Origin: Utricularia gibba
Lineage: Eukaryota; Plantae; Magnoliophyta
Direction: 5' to 3'
Length of the DNA stretch: 64,000 bases
NCBI GenBank assembly: GCA_002189035.1
Contig: CM007990.1
Span: 2,728,001-2,792,000, forward strand
In this document: one piece after another, positions 3,574 to 54,924 of the stretch
Layout of the letters: each line of letters begins with the position of its first letter
Numbering within the stretch: position 1 is the stretch's first letter
The notes under the pieces: model-generated
Seen by the model: the letters and a program-made list of their open reading frames with translations, nothing else
Told to the model about the DNA's origin: nothing
The model's database searches: none
Position numbers and translations under genes: made by a program

Positions 3574-4242
3574 CCCCTAATTAGAGGTGTAAATGAGGCG
3601 AGTCGAGCCAAACTTTGGGTATGCTCGGCTCGACTCGGCCACCTTCATATTGAGCCCGAGCTCGGCTCGGGCTCGGACCGAGCCTAGCAACCCATTCTCA
3701 AGCTCGAGCTTGGGTAGGCTCAAATCTCAAGCTCAAGCTCGTGAATTATACCTACTGCTATGGCTATTTGATGTTCTTCCATGACCTCATAAATGATGGG
3801 GCACCGTTAGTTTTATTCTTTTTTAAATCCATACATATTGACCCAAATTCAAAGACAACAAAAGTAAAAAAAAAAGTTCAATTCTCTGAAAATTTATTCC
3901 AGCCATGTGCAAAACTCATGAAGCACAATAATTAAAACACCACTCCTTGGTAACTCGAAACTAGAGGTTATCTCATCAGAAACCAGCCATTAAGCACTAG
4001 CATCCCCTGTTGACAGCCTTGTATTAGAACATTTGATGGGAAAATAAAAAAAAATTTCATTAGTAAGTCAAAATTCACAAATTTATAAAGTATGCAACAT
4101 GAACAACCACAAATTACCAAACATTCTTCTTTCAAATTCTAACCTTTCACATCAAAATTTCATGATCAAGCAAAGTAAATTCCAGAGGTTCTTCTTCCAC
4201 CTAAATAAAATGAGATAAATATTTTTAGAATTAAAAATAGAG

Positions 4243-6258
4243 CTAATGATATGAAATAAAAAATAAAAACTCTCGTACTGATTTGGATTTTCTAATCCCA
4301 TGAAGATGACGAACCCAATCGCTACCACATAAAAGAACTTGAACAGTCTCTTTTGACAAAGAAGCATGATATGGATCAAGAACCCTTTCTCCAGTACTAA
4401 AATTTGATTCCGATGCAATTGTAGTAGAAGGAATAGATAAAATATCACATGTCATGCGTGATAGTATTTAAACTCAAGCCATCCAATGACTGTCTGAATG
4501 TGAAATCTCTAGCTCAGACTTTTATGGTTGGGGACACTTTCTGAAAAGTCCACAAATTGATTAAACTCAAGCCATCCAATGACTGTCTGAATGTGAAATA
4601 TCAGTAGAAGAGCCAATCAAGTTAAAATTTGGCATATCATTTGAGTCCTCCATAGCTCTATACTCATTGAATAAATCCTGGAACTTGTTACGAACTTGAA
4701 GAATATTTTGGAAACATTCTTCTTTTGAGTAAAGAGCAGAAAATGCAAACTCAACCATCTTCATCTTGAATCGAGAATCTAAAATTGCAGCAATGGACAT
4801 CACTAGATTGCATTCCTTCCAATACTTGTCAAACTTATCTTTCATCTTGGCAATCATATCCTGTAGGTACTTTGCATCAATATCTTAATGGCAATTCAAG
4901 ACCTCTTTAATCCTTCGAATAACTACAAGGAACTTGCTAGATGTAACGTAGTCCGTCCCTGATATCATCTTAGTGGCCTCATAGAAAGTTTCCAAGATTT
5001 TTGTAATCTTATCAATTTTTTCCCAATCTTGCTGTGATGGATAAGAAATAAATTCAGGATGCATTTCTGCAAAAATAGGAAAACCATGCTTGTACTTTGA
5101 AGCCACAATCAACATTTCATATGCAGAATTCCAACGAGTCGAGCAATCATAGAGCAATTCCCGAGCAGACAATTTCATCTGATGAACAATTTCAGAGAAC
5201 TTTTTAAATCTTGATTTTGATGTAGTGATATACCGTACATCATCTCTGATCACTTCAATGACATTTCCAATTTTTGACAATCCATCTTGAACAATCAGAT
5301 TTAAAATATGATTAGTACATCTAACATGAAACAATTTTCCCCCTAAAGGCAAGCTGCGAGCATTTAAAAAGGTTTCTCTTAATATCCGAATTGCCACATC
5401 ATTTGTTGAAGCATTATCAACTGCAATAGAGAATACTTTTCCTTCAATTTCCCAATCTCTAAATCATCGGCTTACTGATTCAGCAATTTCTATTCCCGAA
5501 TGTGGAGGGGGAATATCAATAAAACTGAGTAAATACTTTTCAAGCTTCCAATCAAGCACAAAATGACCCGTAACACACATATAAGAAATCCCTTGTGATG
5601 AGCACTTCCATATATCAGTGGTAAGAGAAATATTTCTTACTCTCTTCAAAAGAGTCTTCAATTTTTTCTTCTCTTTCTTATACACAGCTACACAATCATT
5701 TTTAGCTCTATCTCGAGATATATTTATATAACCAGATAGGTGAAGTTTCATCATAAATGTAAATCCTTCTTCTTCAACCACACTAAAGGCCTTCTCATGC
5801 ATAAGTATCCAGTGTGCCACAGCTTCACGTTGTCTTCCATGATCATATGTACCACTCGAAATAATAGGCTCTTCCACTTTAGATTTCATCGGTTGAAGAT
5901 TCAATTTCCTCTGATTCTTCAAAAACAGAGCTCTAGGTGAACATGTTTTTTCCATATGCCTTTTCAAGTGAGTAGTTGACTGACTTTTGGATATGCTCAA
6001 TTTTTACTTACAATGCATACACTTGGCCTTCTTCTCACCATTAGGTAAAGTACTCTCCTCAAACACCTTCCACACAACAGATGTTTTTTTTCTTTTTCTC
6101 TCTTTAAAGTGATCATCTTCATCATCATCATTTTCTTCCTCATGTCCAGTAACATCATCTTTGTGAATTTCTTCTTGTTCAGCATCAGCATTTAATAATT
6201 CTTCTAAATCAAGATTTTCTGATCCACATTCCTATATATACTCTGAATTTTCTTCCAT
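4243..6258 (-). pseudogene. hAT transposase (BED finger, catalytic core, C-terminal dimerisation domain), frameshifted
   Basis: ORF pieces: TTHLKRHMEKTC (BED), ISLTTDIW, HVRCTNHILNLIVQDGL, DCSTRWNSAYEML, KFDKYW...AAILDSRFKM, CDILSIPSTTIASESNFSTGERVLDPYHASL. Split across at least 5 frames; ATG at 6258. Confidence 0.9.
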
Positions 6259-8884: not shown

Positions 8885-9030
8885 CATATTGTTTTTTATT
8901 TTGAATTTGCACTATTAGTTGATCGTTATTTGGATTGAGTGTATATTTTTTTATTTTAAATTTGTATTATTAGTTGATCCTTAAGTATTTTCTAGATCGA
9001 GAATATATTTTTTATTTTAAATTTATATTA
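8885..9030. repeat. About 60-bp tandem repeat (2-2.5 copies) with core gatccttaagtattttctagatcgag
   Basis: Similar to the gatccttaggtatactttg(g/a)atcgag units at 49070-49100 and 51395-51545. Confidence 0.7.
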
Positions 9031-9234
9031 CGTATTATTTAATCATTTGGAATGTTTTGAATTGAGTTTTCATTTATTCTATATTTCATTTATTTAAACA
9101 ACAATAATCTTAATATACTATAAACTGAATAAAATAATATTAACAAATGCAAATTTAAAGATAAGTCAACAATCAAGATATCAGAACTACTGCATAATTA
9201 TTCACAAGAATGTCGATTGAAAGGTGTCTCTACT

Positions 9235-11035
9235 CATCTGCAAGACTTGCATAGTATTCTCACAAAGGATGCCCATCACATATGGGAGGCTGACCTATTC
9301 AAAAATCTTTGACAGAGCCCGAAATATCATGAGCATAAAGTAAGCCTTCAAAAAAAGGTCGTATCTTGTCCAACATTTAGTGATATATTGTCCCTATCAG
9401 TATGCACATAAGAGGCTAGAAAAACAGTATTGTTTTCTTGAAAAATAAAAAGTTAGTTTTGGCATATAACATGGCCCACGCTAGTTGCAAATAGGAAAAA
9501 AAAAAAAAAAAACACACCAGATTTCTCATTGATTTCTAAGGTGAGTTATCAATCAAGAGGGTGCTATGAAAAACATACCTTGTATTCAACCTATTGTCCA
9601 CAGGCCATACATAATTCAACTCCTTTAAATAGACCATGTTGTTAGGATTAGTCTGCACGCATACAATTGTGTCCATAGTGATTGATTGGATCCATACAAA
9701 AATCAGTTTTTGAATAATGATGGTTCAAAAACTCATTGAGTGATTGCATGTAGATGATCATTACAAAGGACATCATACACTAAGCATTTCGAAAATTCTA
9801 AATGTGAAAAAGATGATGCAAAAACGCTACTCACCATGAGATGACCAATTGCCTGTATCAAAGTTATCCAAGCATCATCTAATAAACTCATGGACATATG
9901 GATGTAGATACACTGTATACATTAAATAAAAAAAGCCAACACCTCTCATAAAGTACTAATACACAAATGCATATAAAAGATGGAAATATATGTTGTGCTA
10001 ACTAAAAGAATACTTAATTAGCTATATATGATTTTTCTAAAGAGATTCTTGACATTGATGGTTCAGACATTTACATGATGTCTGCAACTACGCCATTAAT
10101 GTGCAAGATAATTAGTTTTTTCTGTGTCTAGTGTTACTAAAAAATGGTCCGGTGTAGGCCCAATGGCTCACATATAACTCCAGCGTGTAGTGAAGCTCTT
10201 CATTCTTCTTTATTAGATATGTAACTCTATCATCTAGAGTCACATGTGCATCATGTTTGTTCCCCTCTAGATGAAAAACCTTCGATGTCCTCTCATCCTT
10301 AGTCATATCAGTATCATCCTTACAAGATCTCAGGTTCTTCAAAGCATCGCACCAGTAGTGTTTTGTCCCTAGTACATCCACAAATGATGGTAGAATATTA
10401 CTAAAATTCCTTTGTATGTTTGAAAAGACACATATGAGGTCAGGTGCGTCACTCTTACTCAAAGTATCAAATCCTACAAGAAGAATATGAAAAATTATGA
10501 TATATTTTCGGTCACATTTCTCATAGATGTGCTTTAAAACATTTACTTTTGGTTTTTCCTACTTGACTCAAATTAATGTAACTTGGGGAAATTTCGATTC
10601 CGTTGGAGGATGGATCCAAACAAAACTAATCTATCATTCTTTGAATCTTTTCTTCACGTCTTTCACAATCGCTAGACCTTTTTTCCCTTACATGTGGAAT
10701 AATAAATGTCTCGAGTCCTATAGCATACACTCACAACAAAGAAGTATCGACGTTCTACTTTGAGATATAACTTAGTATAAATACTCACAAATGTCAACAC
10801 ATATGTAATAGACGTTGGAGTCAAGTGAGAAAAAGGTATCTTCAAACATTCTAATAACTCTTTTAAAAATTACAAAAATGGAAACCATAAATCACAACAG
10901 AAATGCTCTGTGCTTAATGCAAACCCCATAGGACTGACATGTGTTGGGAGTTCATCATCAATCATCTCATTGGATTCTTTATCCCAAATCTCATACTCAT
11001 TTGTTTCTAGTTTTGAGTTTCTCGGAAGTATGCAT
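9235..11035 (-). pseudogene. Chimeric Transposase_28-like + linker + FCP1/NIF-like HAD phosphatase gene, copy 1 (degenerate)
   Basis: Minus translations: YEIWDKESNEMIDDELPTHVSPMGFALSTEHFCCDLWFPFL*FLKELLECLKIPFSHLTPTSITYVLTFVS; GKKGLAIVKDVKKRFKE**ISFVWIHP; open linker ORF 10112-10462; RKKLIILHINGVVAD; VYLHPYVHEFIR*CLDNFDTGNWSS; VYLKELNYVW...STLLIDNSP*KSMRN; FFEGLLYAHD...IGQPPICDGHPL*EYY. All are colinear with 49831-51213. Confidence 0.85.
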
Positions 11036-11096: not shown

Positions 11097-11498
11097 ATGA
11101 AGAAGGTGTTTTTGAGAAAATATTTTCCAGCTTTCAAGGCTGAAGGGATAAGAAAAAAGATTAGTGATGTTGAACAAATGAATGGCGAATCATTGCATGA
11201 ATATTGGAAAAGGTTTAATCATCTTTTGGGCTCCTGCCCGCACCATGATTTTCAAACCAATGCATTGGTCAAATATTTCTATGATGGACTTTTATGCATA
11301 GATAGGGCCAAAGTAGATTCAGTGGCGGGAGGATTTTTAAAGAAAAAAACATCAACCGAAGCTCTTTCCTTGCTTAAGAAATTGACTGAGCATTCAAGAC
11401 ATATTATCAGGAAACAAGCCTCAAACAAAAGAGTGTATGAAGTGGAGAGTAAGTCTAGGGCTTCAAAGATTCTCTATCTTGATGGCAATTTCCCATAA
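11097..11498 (+). pseudogene. Athila-like retrotransposon gag fragment
   Basis: KVFLRKYFP...QMNGESLHEYWKRFNHLLGSCPHH...YFYDGL...VDSVAGG...KT..EA is typical of the Retrotrans_gag domain. Confidence 0.85.
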
Positions 11499-46383: not shown

Positions 46384-47019
46384 AATATTACAAGATAAGA
46401 TTTACCAATAAAATGATTGTCTATAAAACACATACATTATTAGAGAAAGTGGAAGAAAAAACATGACAATAGAAAGAGATTTGAATTTTCAGTAGAGTTG
46501 CTCATCATATAATCCCATATTATGTTCTTTTCAATCCACTCAAATTCATTATATTTTTTTTTTAAGAAATGGGTTTGTGAGTCGAGTATAAGAGGTGGAT
46601 ATTGTTCCTTTCATGAACGGGTTTAAGATTATAAAATCCATACCTGCCCTTTATCTACTAAAAATCCAATCTTCACGGATTGGGTACGGGCGGGTATCCA
46701 ACTGGTTGGATTTTTCACCTATTCCTACTTGAGGCAACCACTTTATTCGCCATGGAATAGAAGGAGGAGCTTGTTAAGAATTCCACACTCAAATGGTAGA
46801 ATTTCATTTTCTAGAGATATTAGAAATGCCTCATTTGATTCATAATTCACAAAAATCAGTATTTCTTAAATCAAAACTGAGCCCTTTAGGCCTCGTTTGT
46901 TAGGTGGGTTTAGTCCTCTAAACCCTTGGGTAAAAAGTGTTGTATGCGTTTGTTGGGGTGGTTTAGTAAAACATAAGGGTTTGTATTATCCCGAATTAAA
47001 CCTGCAGCTGCTGGTTTCA

Positions 47020-47090: not shown

Positions 47091-47357
47091 AAATACAACT
47101 TGGTCGATAATACCCTTCTACTCCATAAGCAAATTCGCAACAGTAAATCTATGTATTTGTTCATCTTCTTCAACACAAATCTGTTGGGTTTTTGCAGGTA
47201 CATGGTGAGTGAATTCGAATTCTGATATTTCGACGAAAACCCATACTTCAATTTAAGCCAATAGTACTTATTTTTTGTTTCGCATATGATGGAGTCGGTT
47301 TTTTTTTTTTTTCCGAAAATTGCAGTAGGTTGTGCGTTGCTTATTGAGGCTGTTGCA

Positions 47358-48714
47358 ATGGTTTCCAAGAAGATTATTTTGGCTGCCCTTGCTGCGGCAC
47401 ATTGCGTTGGTCAGCATCTATGTATTATGCGAGTTATGATTGTTATAATGTTGCATTTCTGTTGTACACCAACCGATAGGAGAATTCGGTTCTCATACCG
47501 AGAAAAGATACCACGACAAATAGAGCATTTGACTGCCTTGTTATCTGATTCAAGGAGTGCTTGTCTTGAAAACTTACGATTAAGTGCAGATGTTTTCAAC
47601 AAGTTATGTTATGTTCTTCGAAGTAATGGTAGACTAACCACTTCAAGGTATGTCGATATTCCAGAGCAAGTTGCATTGTTTTTGGGTATTTTGGGTCATC
47701 ACAGGAAAACAAGGCAACAGAAATTTGAATTCATGCGAAGCAGCTGGACAGTGTCCAAATATTTCAATGTGGTATTGTCGGCGGTGCTGTCATTGCACCA
47801 AAATTTACTTAAGACACCTATGCCAATTGATGTTTCTGATCCCAATTCTAGCTTCAGATTTTTTGAGGTATGCAAGAAGATTTTTCTTCGTAGTTGTGGA
47901 TGTGCAACGTGTATTCTGCATGCTGTAACTTTCTGCTCTATTTTTCAAAATTGCTTGGGTGCATTGGATGGTTCATATTTTCAGGTGAAAGTCAAGAATC
48001 AAGATAAACCAAAGTGGAGGAATCGTAAAGGAATCGTGTCCACTAATGTGCTAGGAGTGTGTGATGATAAGCTCATGTTCATCTATTTGTTGTCCGGTTG
48101 GGAGGGATCCGCTGTTGATAGCAGGGTGCTGCGAGATGCAGTTTGTCGACAAAGAGCATTCACTGTACGCAAAGGTAGGTGCTTACAATGTGTAGAAGTC
48201 CATAGTTATGATTACCTTTCATGTATTCCATTTTTTTGTAGGGCATTATTACTTGTGTGATAATGGCTACACAAACGCAGAGGGATTTCTAGCACCCTAC
48301 AGGGGTGTTCGGTACCATCTGAAAGAGTGGGGTGCCGGGTCCATTGCTCCACAGAATGCGAAGGAATATTTCAACATGCGGCATGCTTCTACAAGGAATG
48401 TTATTGAGAGGGTATGGGGTCTAATGAAGATGAGGTGGAGTATTTTACGAAGTTATAGTTTTTATCCTATTAAAACACAAACTCGTATCATACTTGCATG
48501 TGCCCTGCTTCACAATTTTATTCGGCGAGAAATGCCAACTGATCCATGGGAAGAGGTCATTCCGGAAGAGTACCGCAATTCGGATTCACAGGAATATGAG
48601 GATGATGAACATATTTCCTCCATAGGAAACTCAGAGGAGTGGACACAGTGGCGGGATTCAATGGCTGAGATAATGTTTGCGCAATGGAGAGAGACCACAC
48701 GAAGAAGGGTATAA
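47358..48714 (+). CDS. PIF/Harbinger DDE transposase, nearly intact
   Basis: CLENLRLSADVFNKLCYVLR, VDIPEQVALFLGILGH, CLGALDGSYF, WRNRKG..STNVLGVCD, SGWEGSAVDSRVL, YYLCDNGY, FNMRHASTRNVIERVWGLMKMRW, ACALLHNFIR. Introns 47868-47948 (acceptor reads caa) and 48175-48241. Confidence 0.9.
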
Positions 48715-48902: not shown

Positions 48903-49325
48903 CCAGTGTACCAGGCACCGCAAAATTTTTGTCTCGGTGTCTACAAGACACCCGTTTTAGGCACTGCAAAACGCCGCTCTCAGTGTCTGAGAAACATGCG
49001 TCCCAGGCACTGCAGAATGCCGCTCTCGGTGTCTGGAAGACACGTTATTTTAATATTTTCATTAGCGTTCGATTCTTAGGTATACTTTGGATCGAGCGTT
49101 GATATAAATTTAAAATAACCAAATATCCACTCGATTCGAATGATACCTAAGGATCGAACGCTAATAAAAATATTAAAATATCGTATCTGCCACACACCGA
49201 GAGCCGCATTCTGCAGTGCCTGGGACGCATGTCTCTCAGACACTGAGAGCAGCGTTTTGCAGTGCCTACAAGGGGTGTCTTGTAGACACTGAGACAAAAC
49301 TTTTGCGATGGCTGATACACCGAGA
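48903..49325. repeat. Long inverted repeat (about 200-bp arms, about 25-bp loop); a third partial arm copy at 49530-49610
   Basis: 48903-49100 pairs with 49125-49325, e.g. ccaggcactgcagaatgc / gcattctgcagtgcctgg and gattcttaggtat / atacctaaggatc. Confidence 0.9.
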
Positions 49326-49830: not shown

Positions 49831-51213
49831 ATGCTTACTTCCAAGAAACTCCAACTTCAGTTCGCCATCCCAGAGACGTACAATCTATGGGACAAGGCAA
49901 GCGATGAGACAATTGACGGTGTGGTTCCACCCAGGGTGGGAGTAACCGGGTTTTCGGTGTCCACCGAACACTTTCGGTGTGGACTTCGCTTGCCACCACC
50001 ACCATTCATATGTGAGTTGTTGGCATGTTTGGAGGTCCCATTGTCCCACCTGACACCCCGCTCAATCGCTCATGTGTTGGCGTTTTTGAGTGTGTGCATG
50101 GAGGAACAAATTACTCCGGCCCTACCAGTTTTTTTTTTACGTAAGTGTGTGCATTCGAAACTGGAAAACTAATCATTTCTCGCTGAAGGGTAAGCCAGGT
50201 ATTGCACTTGTGAATTCTATTCGGAGTGGATATGATGCATGGTGGACAAGCTTAATTTGGGTGTGTCCACTGGAAGACCTCCGAATTCCAACTACTCTCA
50301 GCTCCTTCAAGAAAATTGGAAAGGCAAAGGGTAATGTGTGATGTAGTATGGTTGCATGGCTCCTTGTGTTGGACGTCAACGGAGTGCTAGCAGACATTGT
50401 CTTCAAAGCCAAGTACCAAAGGTTGCATTGGAAACCAGATGCGGTGATATATGGGAGAAATAGTAAGACACCGTAACATTGTCTCATGGCTGTGTCATGT
50501 TCAACCAATCCATTTTTTCTTGGTTTGGCAGTCTTCCTCAAGCCCTTTGCTCGTGAGTTCATCGAATGGTGTCTTGCAAACTTTGATGTCGGTATATGGT
50601 CTTCGAGGGCGCGTAAGTCCCACTCCATGAAATCTGTAGAGCATGTGCTGCTATCTAATGCTCTAACATCTGTCTATGTTCTATAGTGCACAACTACATG
50701 AGATCACCAAGTGGGTGCTTGGGCCAGATGCACACACCTCGCTGGCTTTCATATGAGATGCATCGAAGACCACTTAAATGCATGTACGTGTGCATGATAA
50801 TAGGTCAAAAGCTGTTGTCTTGAAGGAGTTGTCGTGGATTTGGGGGAAGATGAAGGCTTCTTGGGTCGGTATGATGCAACCAACACCTTACTTATTGACG
50901 ACTCCCCGTTCAAGTCCATCAGAAACCCAGTTAAGTCTATCTGCGATCATATAGTCTGGTATGCATGTTTCTTACTGACATTTAGGCCATCCTGCTTATT
51001 GTGCCACAGCATGACAACGCTGTTTTCCCAACGCCATACCAGTACATGGATGTAAGAAATGCTGCATTAGCTGAGTGTGGAGAAATACGCATCTTCCTTC
51101 AAGGTCTACTAGAATCAAATGATGTACTGAGTTTCATAAAGCATGCACGAATTGGACAGCCTCCGTTAGATGCTAATCACCCCATGTGGGATTATTACAA
51201 AGTTCTTGCTTGA
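49831..51213 (+). pseudogene. Chimeric Transposase_28-like + FCP1/NIF-like HAD phosphatase gene, copy 2 (Harbinger cargo)
   Basis: GLRLPPPPFICELLACLEVPLSHLTPRSIAHVLAFLSVC (gypsy-associated PF04195-like), then LLVLDVNGVLADIV, VFLKPFAREFIEWCLANFDVGIWSSR, KAVVLKELSWIW, TNTLLIDDSPFKSIRNP, NAVFPTPY, IGQPPL...WDYYK (plant NIF/HAD family). Introns present. Lesions: T10 frameshift at 50129-50138, stops at 50339, 50754 and 50775, frameshift at about 50842. Confidence 0.88.
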
Positions 51214-51394
51214 ACATTCATGGCATGTAACAGTGGTTTGAATTTCGGAACATTATGATGTTACTCACTCTACTTTAATCATGGTTTTTCAATATACACT
51301 TCATAAATTACAAAAAACTAAACATAAATTCTCAAATATTCTTATATGCATATTCATTTAAAATAATACCTTAATTTAATATTTTTATTACCAT

Positions 51395-51725
51395 TCGATC
51401 CTTAGGTATGATTCAGATCGAACCTTTTTTTTATTTTAATATTGATATTATCATTTGATCCTTAGGTATACTTTGAATCGAGTGGATATTTATTTATTTT
51501 AAATCTTAATTAACGCTCGACCCTTAGGAGCAATTTGGATCGGGTATACCAAACAAGGGAACACGGGCGTGGTTTATTCATAAACCACGCCCGTGTACAT
51601 ACCCAGCAGCACCACAAGGTCACACGGGCGTGGTTTAGGGTTTACACGCCCGTATACCCTTGTTAGGTATACACGATCCAAATAAATATCCACTCGACTC
51701 GAATCACACCTAAAGATCGAACGCG
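51395..51725. repeat. Second foldback cassette: 3 direct gatccttagg...atcgag units, central perfect hairpin, inverted unit
   Basis: Units at about 51397, 51457 and 51517; hairpin acacgggcgtggttta-ttca-taaaccacgcccgtgt (51561-51596); reverse unit at 51680-51725. Confidence 0.85.
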
Positions 51726-51729
51726 ACAC

Positions 51730-52100
51730 ACATGCACTCAGTTGGCGCATCGATGCCAGGCACCGCAAGAGCATATTTGCGGTGCCTGAAAAGATAGGAT
51801 GCATGTCTTCGAAGGGCAATCCAGTGCAGTCAATACTTCACACCTAACACGCGAGAGGTCGGGCTGAGTGCCACACATATGCAGTTTACTAGCGCATTGA
51901 TGCCAGGCACCGAAAGAGCATATTTGTGGTGCCTGAAAAGATAGGATGCATGTCTTCGAAGGGCAATCCAGTGCAATCAATACTTCACACCTAACACGCG
52001 AGAGGTCGGGCTGAGTGCCACACACATGCAGTTTACTAGCGCATTGATGCCAGGCACCACAAGAGCATATTTGTGGTGCCTGAAAAGATAGGATGCATGA
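51730..52100. repeat. 147-bp tandem repeat, about 2.5 copies, each with a caggcacc...ggtgcctg hairpin
   Basis: gatgccaggcacc recurs at 51752, 51899 and 52046 (period 147). Confidence 0.92.
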
Positions 52101-52274
52101 TAGGCACTACAACCTTTATTTGCGGTGCCTAGAAAGGGATGAGTTCTGCTGTTCTGCTTTCTATAGGTTACGGGGGCTTGATAAATATATTTGGTTACAC
52201 AAATTGAAATCAGATATCAGCTACCCATGGCAAACATGTAAAGCGTAATATTGTCACGCAAAGCAAAATGATCG

Positions 52275-53425
52275 TCATGATACATGGACATCATAAGTGG
52301 ATATGATCAAAACAACAAAGGAAAAACAGAGGTGTAACGAACATCGTAGACCTCTCACAATCCCATCCATCATAACCTCACGTTCTGCACTATTGCTGTC
52401 CAAAAAAAGCTGTAGCTTTATGGGGTTACTCAAGATGACTTCAGTCACTCCTAGATGCTGCATTGTAGTTAATTGCAATGGCATCCCTCGAATGATGTCT
52501 GCAGTAGCATTTCAACGTTCCCGTAGGTCATTGTTTTCAGCAGTAAGTATTTCTCCCAGTTGTGCGATGGCATCATTTGTTCGCTTACTCATTTCTTTCA
52601 ACTCCTCCACCAAGCTATCAAGTTCTGGACCTTGCCTCCTCTTCTTCTTCCTAGGTTCATCACCACTAGTTGGTGTAGTGTGATTACCTGTGTGGCCTCT
52701 ATGAGTCCCTCCTGATGAGGGATACTCTTCATATGTAGAGGATGCATCATGTGATCTTTGGTCACCATTTTTTTCCGAGTCAACCTCCACTTCAGGATAC
52801 TCAAGAAGATGCAATGGTTGTTCCAAACCGGCTATAGAGTCATCAGCCTGCTGTGTTGCATCAGCAGCATCAGGGACACATTCTGCAAATTCTCCGGTGG
52901 CTCTATCTTTGCCAAAGATGATGCACCAATCTGGATAGTAAGGCCAACGCTTAAACCGCAACAAATTGTACACCTTCTCATTGTGCTACACATGTAATCC
53001 ATAAGTGTACATTAATAATCTCATAGGAATTACCTACTACATATATATTAGAACAACAATACTTGTTTGAACTCCACCCATAAATCCTCACTAGCATCTA
53101 CCATGTTTGTTGAGTTATCATACTCGGTACCTGACTTATTGAGAAAGTCAGATAGGGCATTGTAATCTTTTTTCCAGTTATGAATCTTTGATTACATGTG
53201 GGGAGTGCCTCTGATATCTGAGCCGGGACACAATTTGAGGAACGCCTCCTCTAGTGCTTGAAGATAATTACCTTTGAATCCATTCTCTGCTTTCCATCCA
53301 CCTTGAATGATATCCTTTAGAGCGTGGATCAGAAAGCGCTCTTCATCAGGTTTCCACTGTCTTTTGGTCTTAATGTTATCACCACTTCTCCCACGTTTTG
53401 TTGTAGGCACGCTTGCTCCAACCAT
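52275..53425 (-). pseudogene. Harbinger ORF1 Myb/SANT-like DNA-binding protein with two in-frame stops
   Basis: KRQWKPDEERFLIHALKDII..GWKAENGFKGNYLQALE; HM*SKIHNWKKDYNAL; intron 52986-53062; FKRWPYYPDWCIIFGKDRATG; RER*NATA. Stops at 53192-53194 and 52512-52514. 3' end approximate. Confidence 0.88.
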
Positions 53426-54924
53426 TTATGCAACCAACATATAAGTGCGCAACCCATGACAAAACCACAATGCACGTGTAGCTCAATATGGCACAAGAAG
53501 TATAACAACATTATATGGGTTTCAGGGGCACAATTCACAGCCATATTACTCAAAAAACATCACGCACACTAACACCCAGTCGCTCAATCCACGTGGTTAA
53601 GGTCATTCAACCGGCAAATGAAATAAACGCCTCAAATTCGAGAAAAAAATACCTAGTGCATCACCCAATACCCAATTTTTTGGTAAATCAAACTTGCTCC
53701 CAGAGTTGCATGAGCCAAAGATCCATGCACATCGCAACTCGAGGGTTTCAAATTCCCCAATCTGAATCTCACGTTTCTACATGTGGGGTCAAAATAGGAT
53801 AATAAGATATTATATTATACATAAAGGGTATATTAGAGAATTCATATTTTCGAGTATTGAGAAACTATGCATAAATCCTTTTAACAAACATATAAAATTG
53901 ATAATCTCATATTATTGAACCCTATCTACCAAACGCATACTTCATTCTAAACCATTATTTATGGGATACAATAAACTAAAATAATCTAAACCCTTTTAAT
54001 TTAAACCCACCTAACAAACGAGGCCTAAGTGTTTTGCTAGGTACAGAGTTCAAACCATCTATTTTTCTGAAAGATTTTAATAAAACTTTAAAAATTTGGA
54101 TAAAAAATTTGATTTGGCAAATTAAAAAAACCCGAAAGAAGATCTAAATTTTTTTCCCTATGAAAAGCTATTAACACCAAGTTTGGAGCAATCGAGAGTC
54201 TTGGAGTCTTTTATTGGAGTTTTGAAGTTGATTCTTATATTTTTGTAAGAGTATGAACTTAAATTAAATATAAATAAAACATGGGATATTAAAAAAAACA
54301 AAATGATTTTAATGATGTAGTTGATTTTATAATTTTAATACCTCTAAAACTTAGATAAAGGAATCAATACTTGATATTTATGAACACACAAATGAGCAAT
54401 TTTCTATGAAGATTATCTTTTTATTAATTCGATAATTTATGTATATTTACAGGTTTTTTTTATTAAATAATAACTTTTGTAAGAACCAATTAAGTCAATT
54501 GAGTAAAAAATGGAGATTATCTATTTATTTATTACGTAACTTATGATTTGTTCAATCGTTTCAATTTTTTATTTAGTTTTTATGAATTAAAATCTTTATA
54601 TGTTCTAGAAATTCTAATTTTACAATTTATTTTTAAAATTATTAATTTTTTAAAATTTGTATTTTAATGATTGTATAAAAATATTAATTAAAAAATTATA
54701 TTGTTTAATTTGTATAGAATTCAAAAATATATTTATAATTATAATGTAATGTATAAAGTTTTATAATATAATTTTAATATTTTCGAATATAGCTTTACCA
54801 CTTTAATATTAATTTTTTTTTATAAAATATAAAATACAAATTCAAAATGCAAAAAGCTCTTTAATTTTAGTAGATGATTTCTTTCAAACGTTTGAAGCGC
54901 GCGACGCATACGTTTCCCTCCGCC

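Follow-up and report, generated by a model that had tools for sequence, protein, structure and literature searches.

In a 64,000-nt stretch of the Utricularia gibba genome (GenBank assembly GCA_002189035.1, contig CM007990.1, positions 2,728,001 to 2,792,000; hereafter the window), the plus-strand segment 49831-51213 probably represents a defunct copy, shortened by an internal deletion, of a passenger gene carried by a transposon, in which a TRP28 domain (PF04195) is joined to an FCP1/NIF-type HAD domain. This segment, hereafter copy 2, lies between the two other genes of a complete PIF/Harbinger element. Copy 2 is dead: it has a frameshift in a T-run, a TGA and a large deletion at the junction of the two domains, and four more lesions in the third HAD exon (exon c). 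A second and more decayed copy of the gene (copy 1) lies on the minus strand of the window at approximately 9236-11033.

The TRP28 domain and the junction of copy 2

The TRP28 domain of copy 2 (49831-50338, +) comprises 170 codons, whose reading frame is broken once, at a run of ten T residues (50129-50138). Frame 0 starts at the ATG at 49831 and reads 102 codons up to the T-run, ending in ...ITPALPVFF, and frame 1 continues past the run for 67 codons, beginning with YVSVCIRNW... and ending at the TGA at 50339-50341. A first-pass annotation of this DNA had noticed that removal of one T restores the reading VFFYVSVC; the two frames indeed abut exactly at the T-run (...PVFF / YVSVC...), and the equivalent of copy 1 is RYFFVVSVCYR.

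The same annotation had related the N-terminal part to PF04195. The N-terminal 103 residues of copy 2 matched this family with an E value of 5.2e-10, scoring 39.8 bits against a cut-off of 26.2 over profile positions 3-62 of 69. An exhaustive HMMER (phmmer) search with this piece returned 21 weak hits, the best with 38% identity, and all 20 that were scanned carry PF04195; the contigs that encode the closest of these proteins extend over no more than 1.0 and 3.3 kb. TRP28 was also the assignment of the Atlas feature search, with a score of 0.97. A word search with the piece gave no candidates, the length window of the tool excluding full-length relatives of so short a query. The pattern GLRLP..PF..L.....LTP.S....F was seen in the sequence, and the Asn in the LTPNS of the retrotransposon Retand is Arg in copy 2 (LTPRS) and Thr in copy 1 (LTPTS). 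TRP28 has been described as restricted to mobile elements of flowering plants, without similarity outside transposable elements, and as predicted to bind DNA (PMC11963269; PMC6317226).

The first-pass annotation had proposed structure prediction as a check. The AlphaFold model of residues 1-103 of copy 2 had a pLDDT of 88, and the model of a full-length relative (P0003, 35% identity) showed an alpha/beta domain of ~160 residues with a pLDDT above 90 over residues 30-190. A fold search with the 103-residue model gave a best Z score of 3.7, to MerR-type DNA-binding domains, which is below the useful threshold; with the full domain of the relative, the best Z score among 48,161 chains was 2.4, and all Foldseek E values exceeded 3. 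TRP28 is thus a confidently folding domain for which no solved structural neighbour was found.

The TGA at 50339-50341 had been described as all that separates the two domains in one frame. Reading frame 1 on both sides gave the same result, with the unchanged frame continuing downstream of the TGA as CSMVAWLLVLDVNGVLADI. We rejected this one-frame layout as the native architecture, however; it is probably a by-product of deletion, and the junction resembles an intron remnant. The copy 2 sequence ...GCAAAGGGTAATGT pairs with the end of exon 1 and the donor of intron 1 in copy 1, ...CCAAAAGTAAATGT. Homology between the copies picks up again ~8 codons ahead of motif I of the HAD domain, and intron 1 and the linker exon of copy 1 have no counterpart in copy 2. 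Because the copy 2 junction aligns with the exon end and donor of copy 1, the TGA looks like part of a short remnant of intron 1 (GGTAATGTG) at the deletion junction (50330-50347, +). Copy 2 would accordingly be a deletion derivative that lost intron 1 and the ~130-codon linker, as the earlier proposal of an internal deletion had it. With a donor match of only some 8-13 nt, these two statements are well supported and fall short of proof.

The HAD domain and the DxNG subfamily

The HAD part of copy 2 comprises 216 codons on the plus strand and is interrupted by three introns, all GT..AG. Its exons were compared with a profile of 32 relatives carrying a D-x-N-G motif I (the DxNG profile, see below), which was run against all six-frame pieces of the window. 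Exon a (50342-50462) encodes motif I as LLVLDVNGV, with the Asp nucleophile and an Asn at +2, covers profile positions 4-25 and ends at a phase-1 donor, GTAAGA, at 50463; the phase-1 intron that follows occupies 50463-50531. Exon b (50532-50612) encodes REFIEW...FDVGIWSS with the Ser of motif II, matched Pfam NIF with an E value of 0.025 on its own and the DxNG profile with 6.7e-8, and has a phase-1 donor, GTAAGT, at 50613 (phase-1 intron, 50613-50686). Exon c (50687-50929) carries motif III (VVLKEL) and motif IV (TNTLLIDDSP) and is followed by a phase-0 intron at 50930-51009. Exon d (51010-51213) encodes the C-terminal extension GEIRIFLQGLL..SFIK and the stop codon, corresponds to profile positions 163-209 and shows 44% identity to 9367-9239 of copy 1. 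A division of motifs III and IV between two exons was considered and dropped; they lie in one uninterrupted exon in both copies (9724-9539 in copy 1).

Exon c also holds four lesions. The T-run frameshift and the TGA at the junction had been reported before, and both stand, but the extent of the decay had been understated. The frame is off by 1 nt where the exon begins, and further on there are two stops (TGA at 50754-50756 and TAA at 50775-50777) and a G-run frameshift at ~50841-50846.

Motif I departs from the D-x-D-x-(T/V) of NIF/FCP1 proteins, reading D-V-N-G-V in copy 2 and H-I-N-G-V in copy 1, each with Asn at +2. The readings given in the first-pass annotation, LDVNGVLAD for copy 2 and LHINGVVAD for copy 1 (at 10115-10077, -), were both reproduced. 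The Ser of motif II, the Lys of motif III and the Asp-Asp or Asp-Asn of motif IV are present in order, as IWSS, VLKEL and LLIDDSP in copy 2 and as NWSS, YLKEL and LLIDNSP in copy 1. Searches with single HAD exons in the PDB, and with the last HAD exon in the Atlas, gave no usable match. A word search with the last exon gave no candidates, under the same exclusion of full-length relatives by the length window.

Relatives of the HAD domain were gathered by scanning metagenome contigs with the open reading frame (ORF) that holds exon c, which yielded 51 loci. Those scanned are NIF proteins by Pfam, with E values of 1e-9 to 1e-17, and every one of the 48 with a readable motif I has (L/F)DLNG. The Asp nucleophile, the Ser of motif II, the Lys of motif III and the Asp-Asp of motif IV are invariant across the alignment of the subfamily. 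Its marks were also found in the fusion gene of the window, namely the LDLNG-type motif I, REF(I/L)EW, TNTLLIDDSP.K..NP and the C-terminal extension G.LR.YL...FV. The DxNG profile matched the copy 2 exons in collinear order, and copy 1 at 9724-9539 (E value of 1.4e-7); the match of exon c is circular, the relatives having been fetched with that exon, and the matches of the other exons are independent. The spliced reading of copy 2, with an X at each break, aligned to profile positions 5-209 with 125 bits and an E value of 5e-37, and chance does not account for this agreement. By this comparison, the HAD domain of the window is evidently a member of an old NIF subfamily with Asn at the Asp+2 position. 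Because all 48 readable relatives carry DLNG, the Asn of motif I is, as judged from the alignment, ancestral to the subfamily and not a product of decay in copy 2. The nearest solved structure to the DxNG relatives was UBLCP1 (PDB 3shq, E value of 1.8e-6).

A plant NIF subfamily with DxNG had been claimed in the first-pass annotation. The subfamily exists, on contigs resembling those of marine green algae and giant viruses; land plants were not among the relatives shown, although a plant cluster of ~263 aa with the automatic name TIM50-like may contain members from them. The likeness to marine green algae concerns contigs with a GC content of 0.52-0.61 and is suggested by composition and sample type. 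Versions of 160-175 aa are encoded on giant-virus contigs, and the corresponding Atlas clusters are labelled Nucleocytoviricota; because DxNG NIF-like proteins are encoded there, the carriers of this acid-less HAD subfamily include viruses in addition to plant transposons. Literature searches for DLNG or DxNG motifs, or for NIF genes in transposons, found nothing.

Several observations concern the relatives themselves. The giant-virus carriers include a 204-kb contig and a GVMAG bin (loci L030-L051 from metagenomes and L056-L071 from IMG/VR; for example, L040:4422-4901). Larger DxNG paralogues occur on GC-rich, green-alga-like contigs, and one alga-like contig has two adjacent DxNG NIF paralogues, of 346 codons (L023:2527-3564) and 417 codons (L023:3612-4862).

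Comparison of the two copies and past selection

Copy 1 has many more stops than copy 2, several of them at codons that are Trp in copy 2, and retains what copy 2 has lost. Its TRP28 exon ends at a GT donor, followed by intron 1 (10546-10474) and by a linker exon of ~130 codons (10473 to ~10014), in agreement with the intron and long linker that had been reported at this point. More than 116 codons of the linker exon can be read without a stop (ORF 10112-10462), in the frame that fits a phase-1 donor such as the remnant in copy 2. The donor of copy 1 itself is in phase 0, one base short, which we take as a lesion. In the HAD part, the introns of copy 1 lie at the same three protein positions as those of copy 2, in phases 1, 1 and 0 and with GT..AG boundaries in both. 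The retention of introns had been taken in the first-pass annotation as a sign of capture at the DNA level, and the introns may have come from a host donor.

A Retrotrans_gag fragment (PF03732, E value of 1.6e-12) was also observed at 11097-11498 (+), ~60 nt upstream of the start of copy 1 and on the opposite strand. It probably cuts off the promoter side of copy 1.

The two copies share a start of the form M-x-T-S-x-K-L, an end of the form ..YY..LA, the domain order, the strand and the stop region. No similarity between them was detectable at the DNA level, and their introns could not be aligned. Gapless alignment was possible over 267 codons, 150 of which belong to TRP28. Over these codons, identity at codon positions 1, 2 and 3 was 0.59, 0.69 and 0.37, and the proportions of nonsynonymous (pN) and synonymous (pS) differences were 0.345 and 0.813, the latter saturated. 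The resulting pN/pS was 0.42 (bootstrap range of 0.36-0.50), a value biased somewhat downward by the choice of the segments by protein similarity. By domain, pN and pS were 0.38 and 0.79 for TRP28 and 0.30 and 0.84 for HAD. Because protein similarity has outlasted the saturated synonymous sites, both domains were under purifying selection in the past, and for long; the fusion gene was functional for a long time, and the data are hard to explain otherwise.

The same figures bear on the alternative that the gene is non-functional debris, in which a fragment of a host NIF gene was captured in Pack-type fashion beside a piece of a retroelement without ever yielding a functional protein. Capture of gene fragments is frequent in plant DNA transposons (PMC8903248), and both copies in the window are dead. 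However, both domains are complete, the start, the stop and the intron sites and phases are common to copies whose synonymous sites are saturated, and pN/pS is 0.42 across both domains. Debris is largely refuted by these observations and is a very improbable account.

The ancestral gene suggested by the two copies would have contained four introns, of which three interrupted the HAD part and one followed the TRP28 exon, and would have encoded a product of ~520 aa, with a TRP28 domain of ~170 aa, a linker of ~130 aa and a HAD domain of ~215 aa. A layout of this kind, with ~170 aa of transposon-type domain, a linker and a HAD domain, had been put forward in the first-pass annotation; it gains weight from two anciently diverged copies that keep the start, order, strand, intron sites and stop region, with pN/pS well below 1 in both domains. 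We infer that the two domains were once one polypeptide: their order and strand are shared by the copies, no stop behind the TRP28 exon is conserved, and the linker exon is open.

These features also separate a fused gene from a pair of adjacent genes, in which a TRP28 ORF and a gene of the NIF type travelled together but were made into two proteins. Such a pair would suit the frequent occurrence of TRP28 proteins of 100-270 aa that stand alone, the stop that separates the domains in copy 2, and the failure to find a transcript or an intact fusion protein. However, no stop is conserved at the end of the TRP28 exon, where copy 1 has a GT donor and copy 2 an apparent donor remnant, and the stop of copy 2 falls inside that remnant. 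The linker exon of copy 1 has its open frame where a phase-1 donor would place it, and no start codon is conserved ahead of motif I. Two separate genes are thus unlikely, and the fused gene is preferred.

A number of results, together with the bias of the selection test mentioned above, weigh against a transposon-borne fusion gene. With the HAD exons submitted singly, the best score to Pfam NIF (PF03031) was 14.7 bits, below the gathering cut-off of 21.8. No intact fusion protein was found, NIF was absent from those scanned among the 21 best HMMER hits obtained with the TRP28 part, and word searches with both domains came back blank. No RNA contigs aligned to the stretch at 80% likeness; none of the listed runs covers the stretch, and the outcome does not show that the gene is silent. 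In Buddleja and Perilla, the sources of the closest Harbinger relatives that were fetched, the two elements contain no TRP28 or NIF gene. Finally, the function of the gene is pure inference, TRP28 having no known fold or activity.

The carrier element and the flanking repeats

The element that carries copy 2 is bounded by perfect terminal inverted repeats (TIRs) of 24 nt. The left TIR, GGCCTCGTTTGTTAGGTGGGTTTA, is at 46889-46912 (+), and the right TIR at 54002-54025 (-) matches it at 24 of 24 nt. The flanks are TTA and TAA, which do not form an exact direct repeat. A broken DDE transposase gene of the PIF/Harbinger type lies at 47286-48714 (+) in two ORFs (PF13359, DDE_Tnp_4, E values of 9e-14 and 5.7e-5), and its relatives, from Lamiales plants, are 57-62% identical. 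The second Harbinger gene, of the Myb/SANT-like type, was located at 52401-53419 (-) by tblastn with the neighbouring gene from Buddleja (E values of 2e-23 and 1e-10), a query with a weak precomputed hit to PF12776. The carrier thus shows the marks of PIF/Harbinger elements, with TIRs, TWA-type flanks, a DDE_Tnp_4 transposase and a Myb/SANT-like gene. Near copy 1, a hAT transposase gene (4152-6000, -; PF14372, E value of 2.1e-20) lies 3.2 kb downstream on the same strand; a search for hAT ends around copy 1 found none that were credible.

The flanks of both copies contain a repeat of ~65 nt, whose core reads ...AAATATCCACTCGATTCGAAT.ATACCTAAGGATCGAA... and which is absent from the rest of the 64 kb (6 matches against 0.14 expected). 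Upstream of copy 2, a unit lies at 49095-49190 (+), within a 415-nt palindrome at 48906-49320. Downstream of copy 2, three units, two antisense and one sense, lie within 51360-51760. The unit downstream of copy 1 (8940-9035, -) is 75-79% identical to the copy 2 units (blastn E values of 4e-15 and 2e-10). The units on the two sides of copy 2 are inverted: those downstream form an inverted repeat of 92 nt, 84% complementary, with 49089-49180. Possible readings of these repeats are a repeat-bracketed cassette, selected binding sites, or a MITE-like family that landed beside both copies.

The first of these readings leads to another view of the gene, as part of a small mobile cassette made up of the fusion gene and its ~65-nt repeats, which would have entered transposons of several superfamilies, by insertion or by capture, instead of belonging to the Harbinger proper. 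The confinement of the repeat to the flanks of the two copies, the inversion of the units around copy 2 and the absence of the gene from related Harbingers are all in its favour, as is the similarity of the units near copies whose introns cannot be aligned. However, neither a target-site duplication nor clean ends of a cassette could be identified, and the repeats occur in both orientations and in arrays, as transposase-binding or satellite-like repeats do. Moreover, the upstream side of copy 1 is cut by the gag fragment and only one flank can be compared. We regard an independent cassette as improbable and keep to a passenger gene of the transposon.

Two further repeat structures were observed in the Harbinger element. 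The 415-nt palindrome (48906-49320), between the transposase and fusion genes, is near-perfect, with arms of 191 nt that are 90% complementary, and contains repeated GCCGCTCTCGGTG.CTGGAAGACA motifs. Between the fusion gene and the Myb-like gene, a unit of 147 nt that contains a GGCACCGCAAGAGCATATTTGCGGTGCC hairpin occurs in three tandem copies, at 51723-52136.

Proposed function

In the ancestral protein, the TRP28 domain would direct the protein to nucleic acid or chromatin. In the HAD module, the Asp nucleophile, the Ser, the Lys and the Asp-Asp that hold Mg2+ and phosphate are kept, and the general acid is gone. This module would then bind, or slowly turn over, a phospho-substrate, for example a phosphoprotein of the transcription or silencing machinery, to the benefit of the transposon. 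The idea of a pseudo-phosphatase or phospho-binder comes only from residue logic and from the DxN mutant of another HAD enzyme. In T4 Pnkp, a DxDxT enzyme, replacement of the Asp at +2 by Asn abolished the phosphomonoesterase activity, and the phosphorylated RNA end was sequestered (PMC3592404). The most likely mechanism, though a tentative one, is a targeting domain combined with a phospho-binder or slow phosphatase that would act in the interest of the transposon on host proteins of transcription or silencing.

A broader version would make the TRP28-DxNG-HAD gene and its own ~65-nt repeats a helper module common to several superfamilies of DNA transposons. TRP28 might recognise the repeats or the chromatin of the transposon, and the acid-less HAD domain might sequester a host factor involved in transcription or silencing, or remove its phosphate slowly, giving a counter-silencing or targeting device parallel to PMD-PP7L. 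This version is speculative and rather doubtful.

Comparison with known systems

The usual view of plant DNA transposons gives them a transposase, in some cases a single partner gene, and beyond that only captured junk. In the window, a complete two-domain gene kept by purifying selection is found in a Harbinger element and beside a hAT transposase, which points to a helper function useful to different kinds of transposons. The fusion gene can be placed among the accessory genes of transposons, as one that incorporates a host-type domain, probably by capture, and the first-pass interpretation largely holds. Like Pack-TYPE captures (PMC8903248) and the accessory genes of autonomous elements, it places intron-bearing host-type coding sequence between cut-and-paste ends. 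Pack-TYPE elements, however, are non-autonomous and carry fragments, whereas here a whole domain is fused to TRP28, stands beside transposase and Myb-like genes and was under long-term purifying selection. No paper describing a TRP28-NIF fusion was found in the literature.

The N-terminal domain belongs to the same Pfam family as the TRP28 antisense ORFs of Retand, a Ty3/gypsy long terminal repeat (LTR) element (PMC11963269; PMC6317226). In contrast to Retand, it occurs here in or near DNA transposons, within the Harbinger TIRs for copy 2 and beside the hAT transposase for copy 1, and forms the N-terminal part of a spliced gene with a fused HAD domain; the LTPNS of Retand is replaced by LTPRS and LTPTS. 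The C-terminal domain has the HAD layout of the FCP1/SCP/NIF C-terminal-domain (CTD) phosphatases (PF03031), with the Asp of motif I, Ser of II, Lys of III and Asp-Asp of IV in the canonical order. It differs from them in having D-x-N-G for D-x-D-x-T/V, without the general acid, in the C-terminal extension typical of the DxNG subfamily and in being borne by a transposon.

The closest analogue in concept is the PMD-PP7 module, formed by MAIN/MAIL1 with PP7L and by the MAIL3 fusion, which acts in gene expression and transposon silencing (PMC7156037). In both cases, selection has kept a phosphatase-type domain together with a domain known from extra ORFs of plant gypsy elements, PMD from Ogre and TRP28 from Retand. 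The partners are not the same, with PMD and a PPP metallophosphatase in one and TRP28 and a HAD domain in the other, and the PMD-PP7 proteins are encoded by host genes, whereas the present gene lies within transposons and is known from its sequence alone. The gene links TRP28 with a NIF subfamily bearing Asn for the catalytic acid, and provides a concrete parallel to the PMD-PP7L silencing module. If its function is found, it could show how transposons handle host transcription or silencing.

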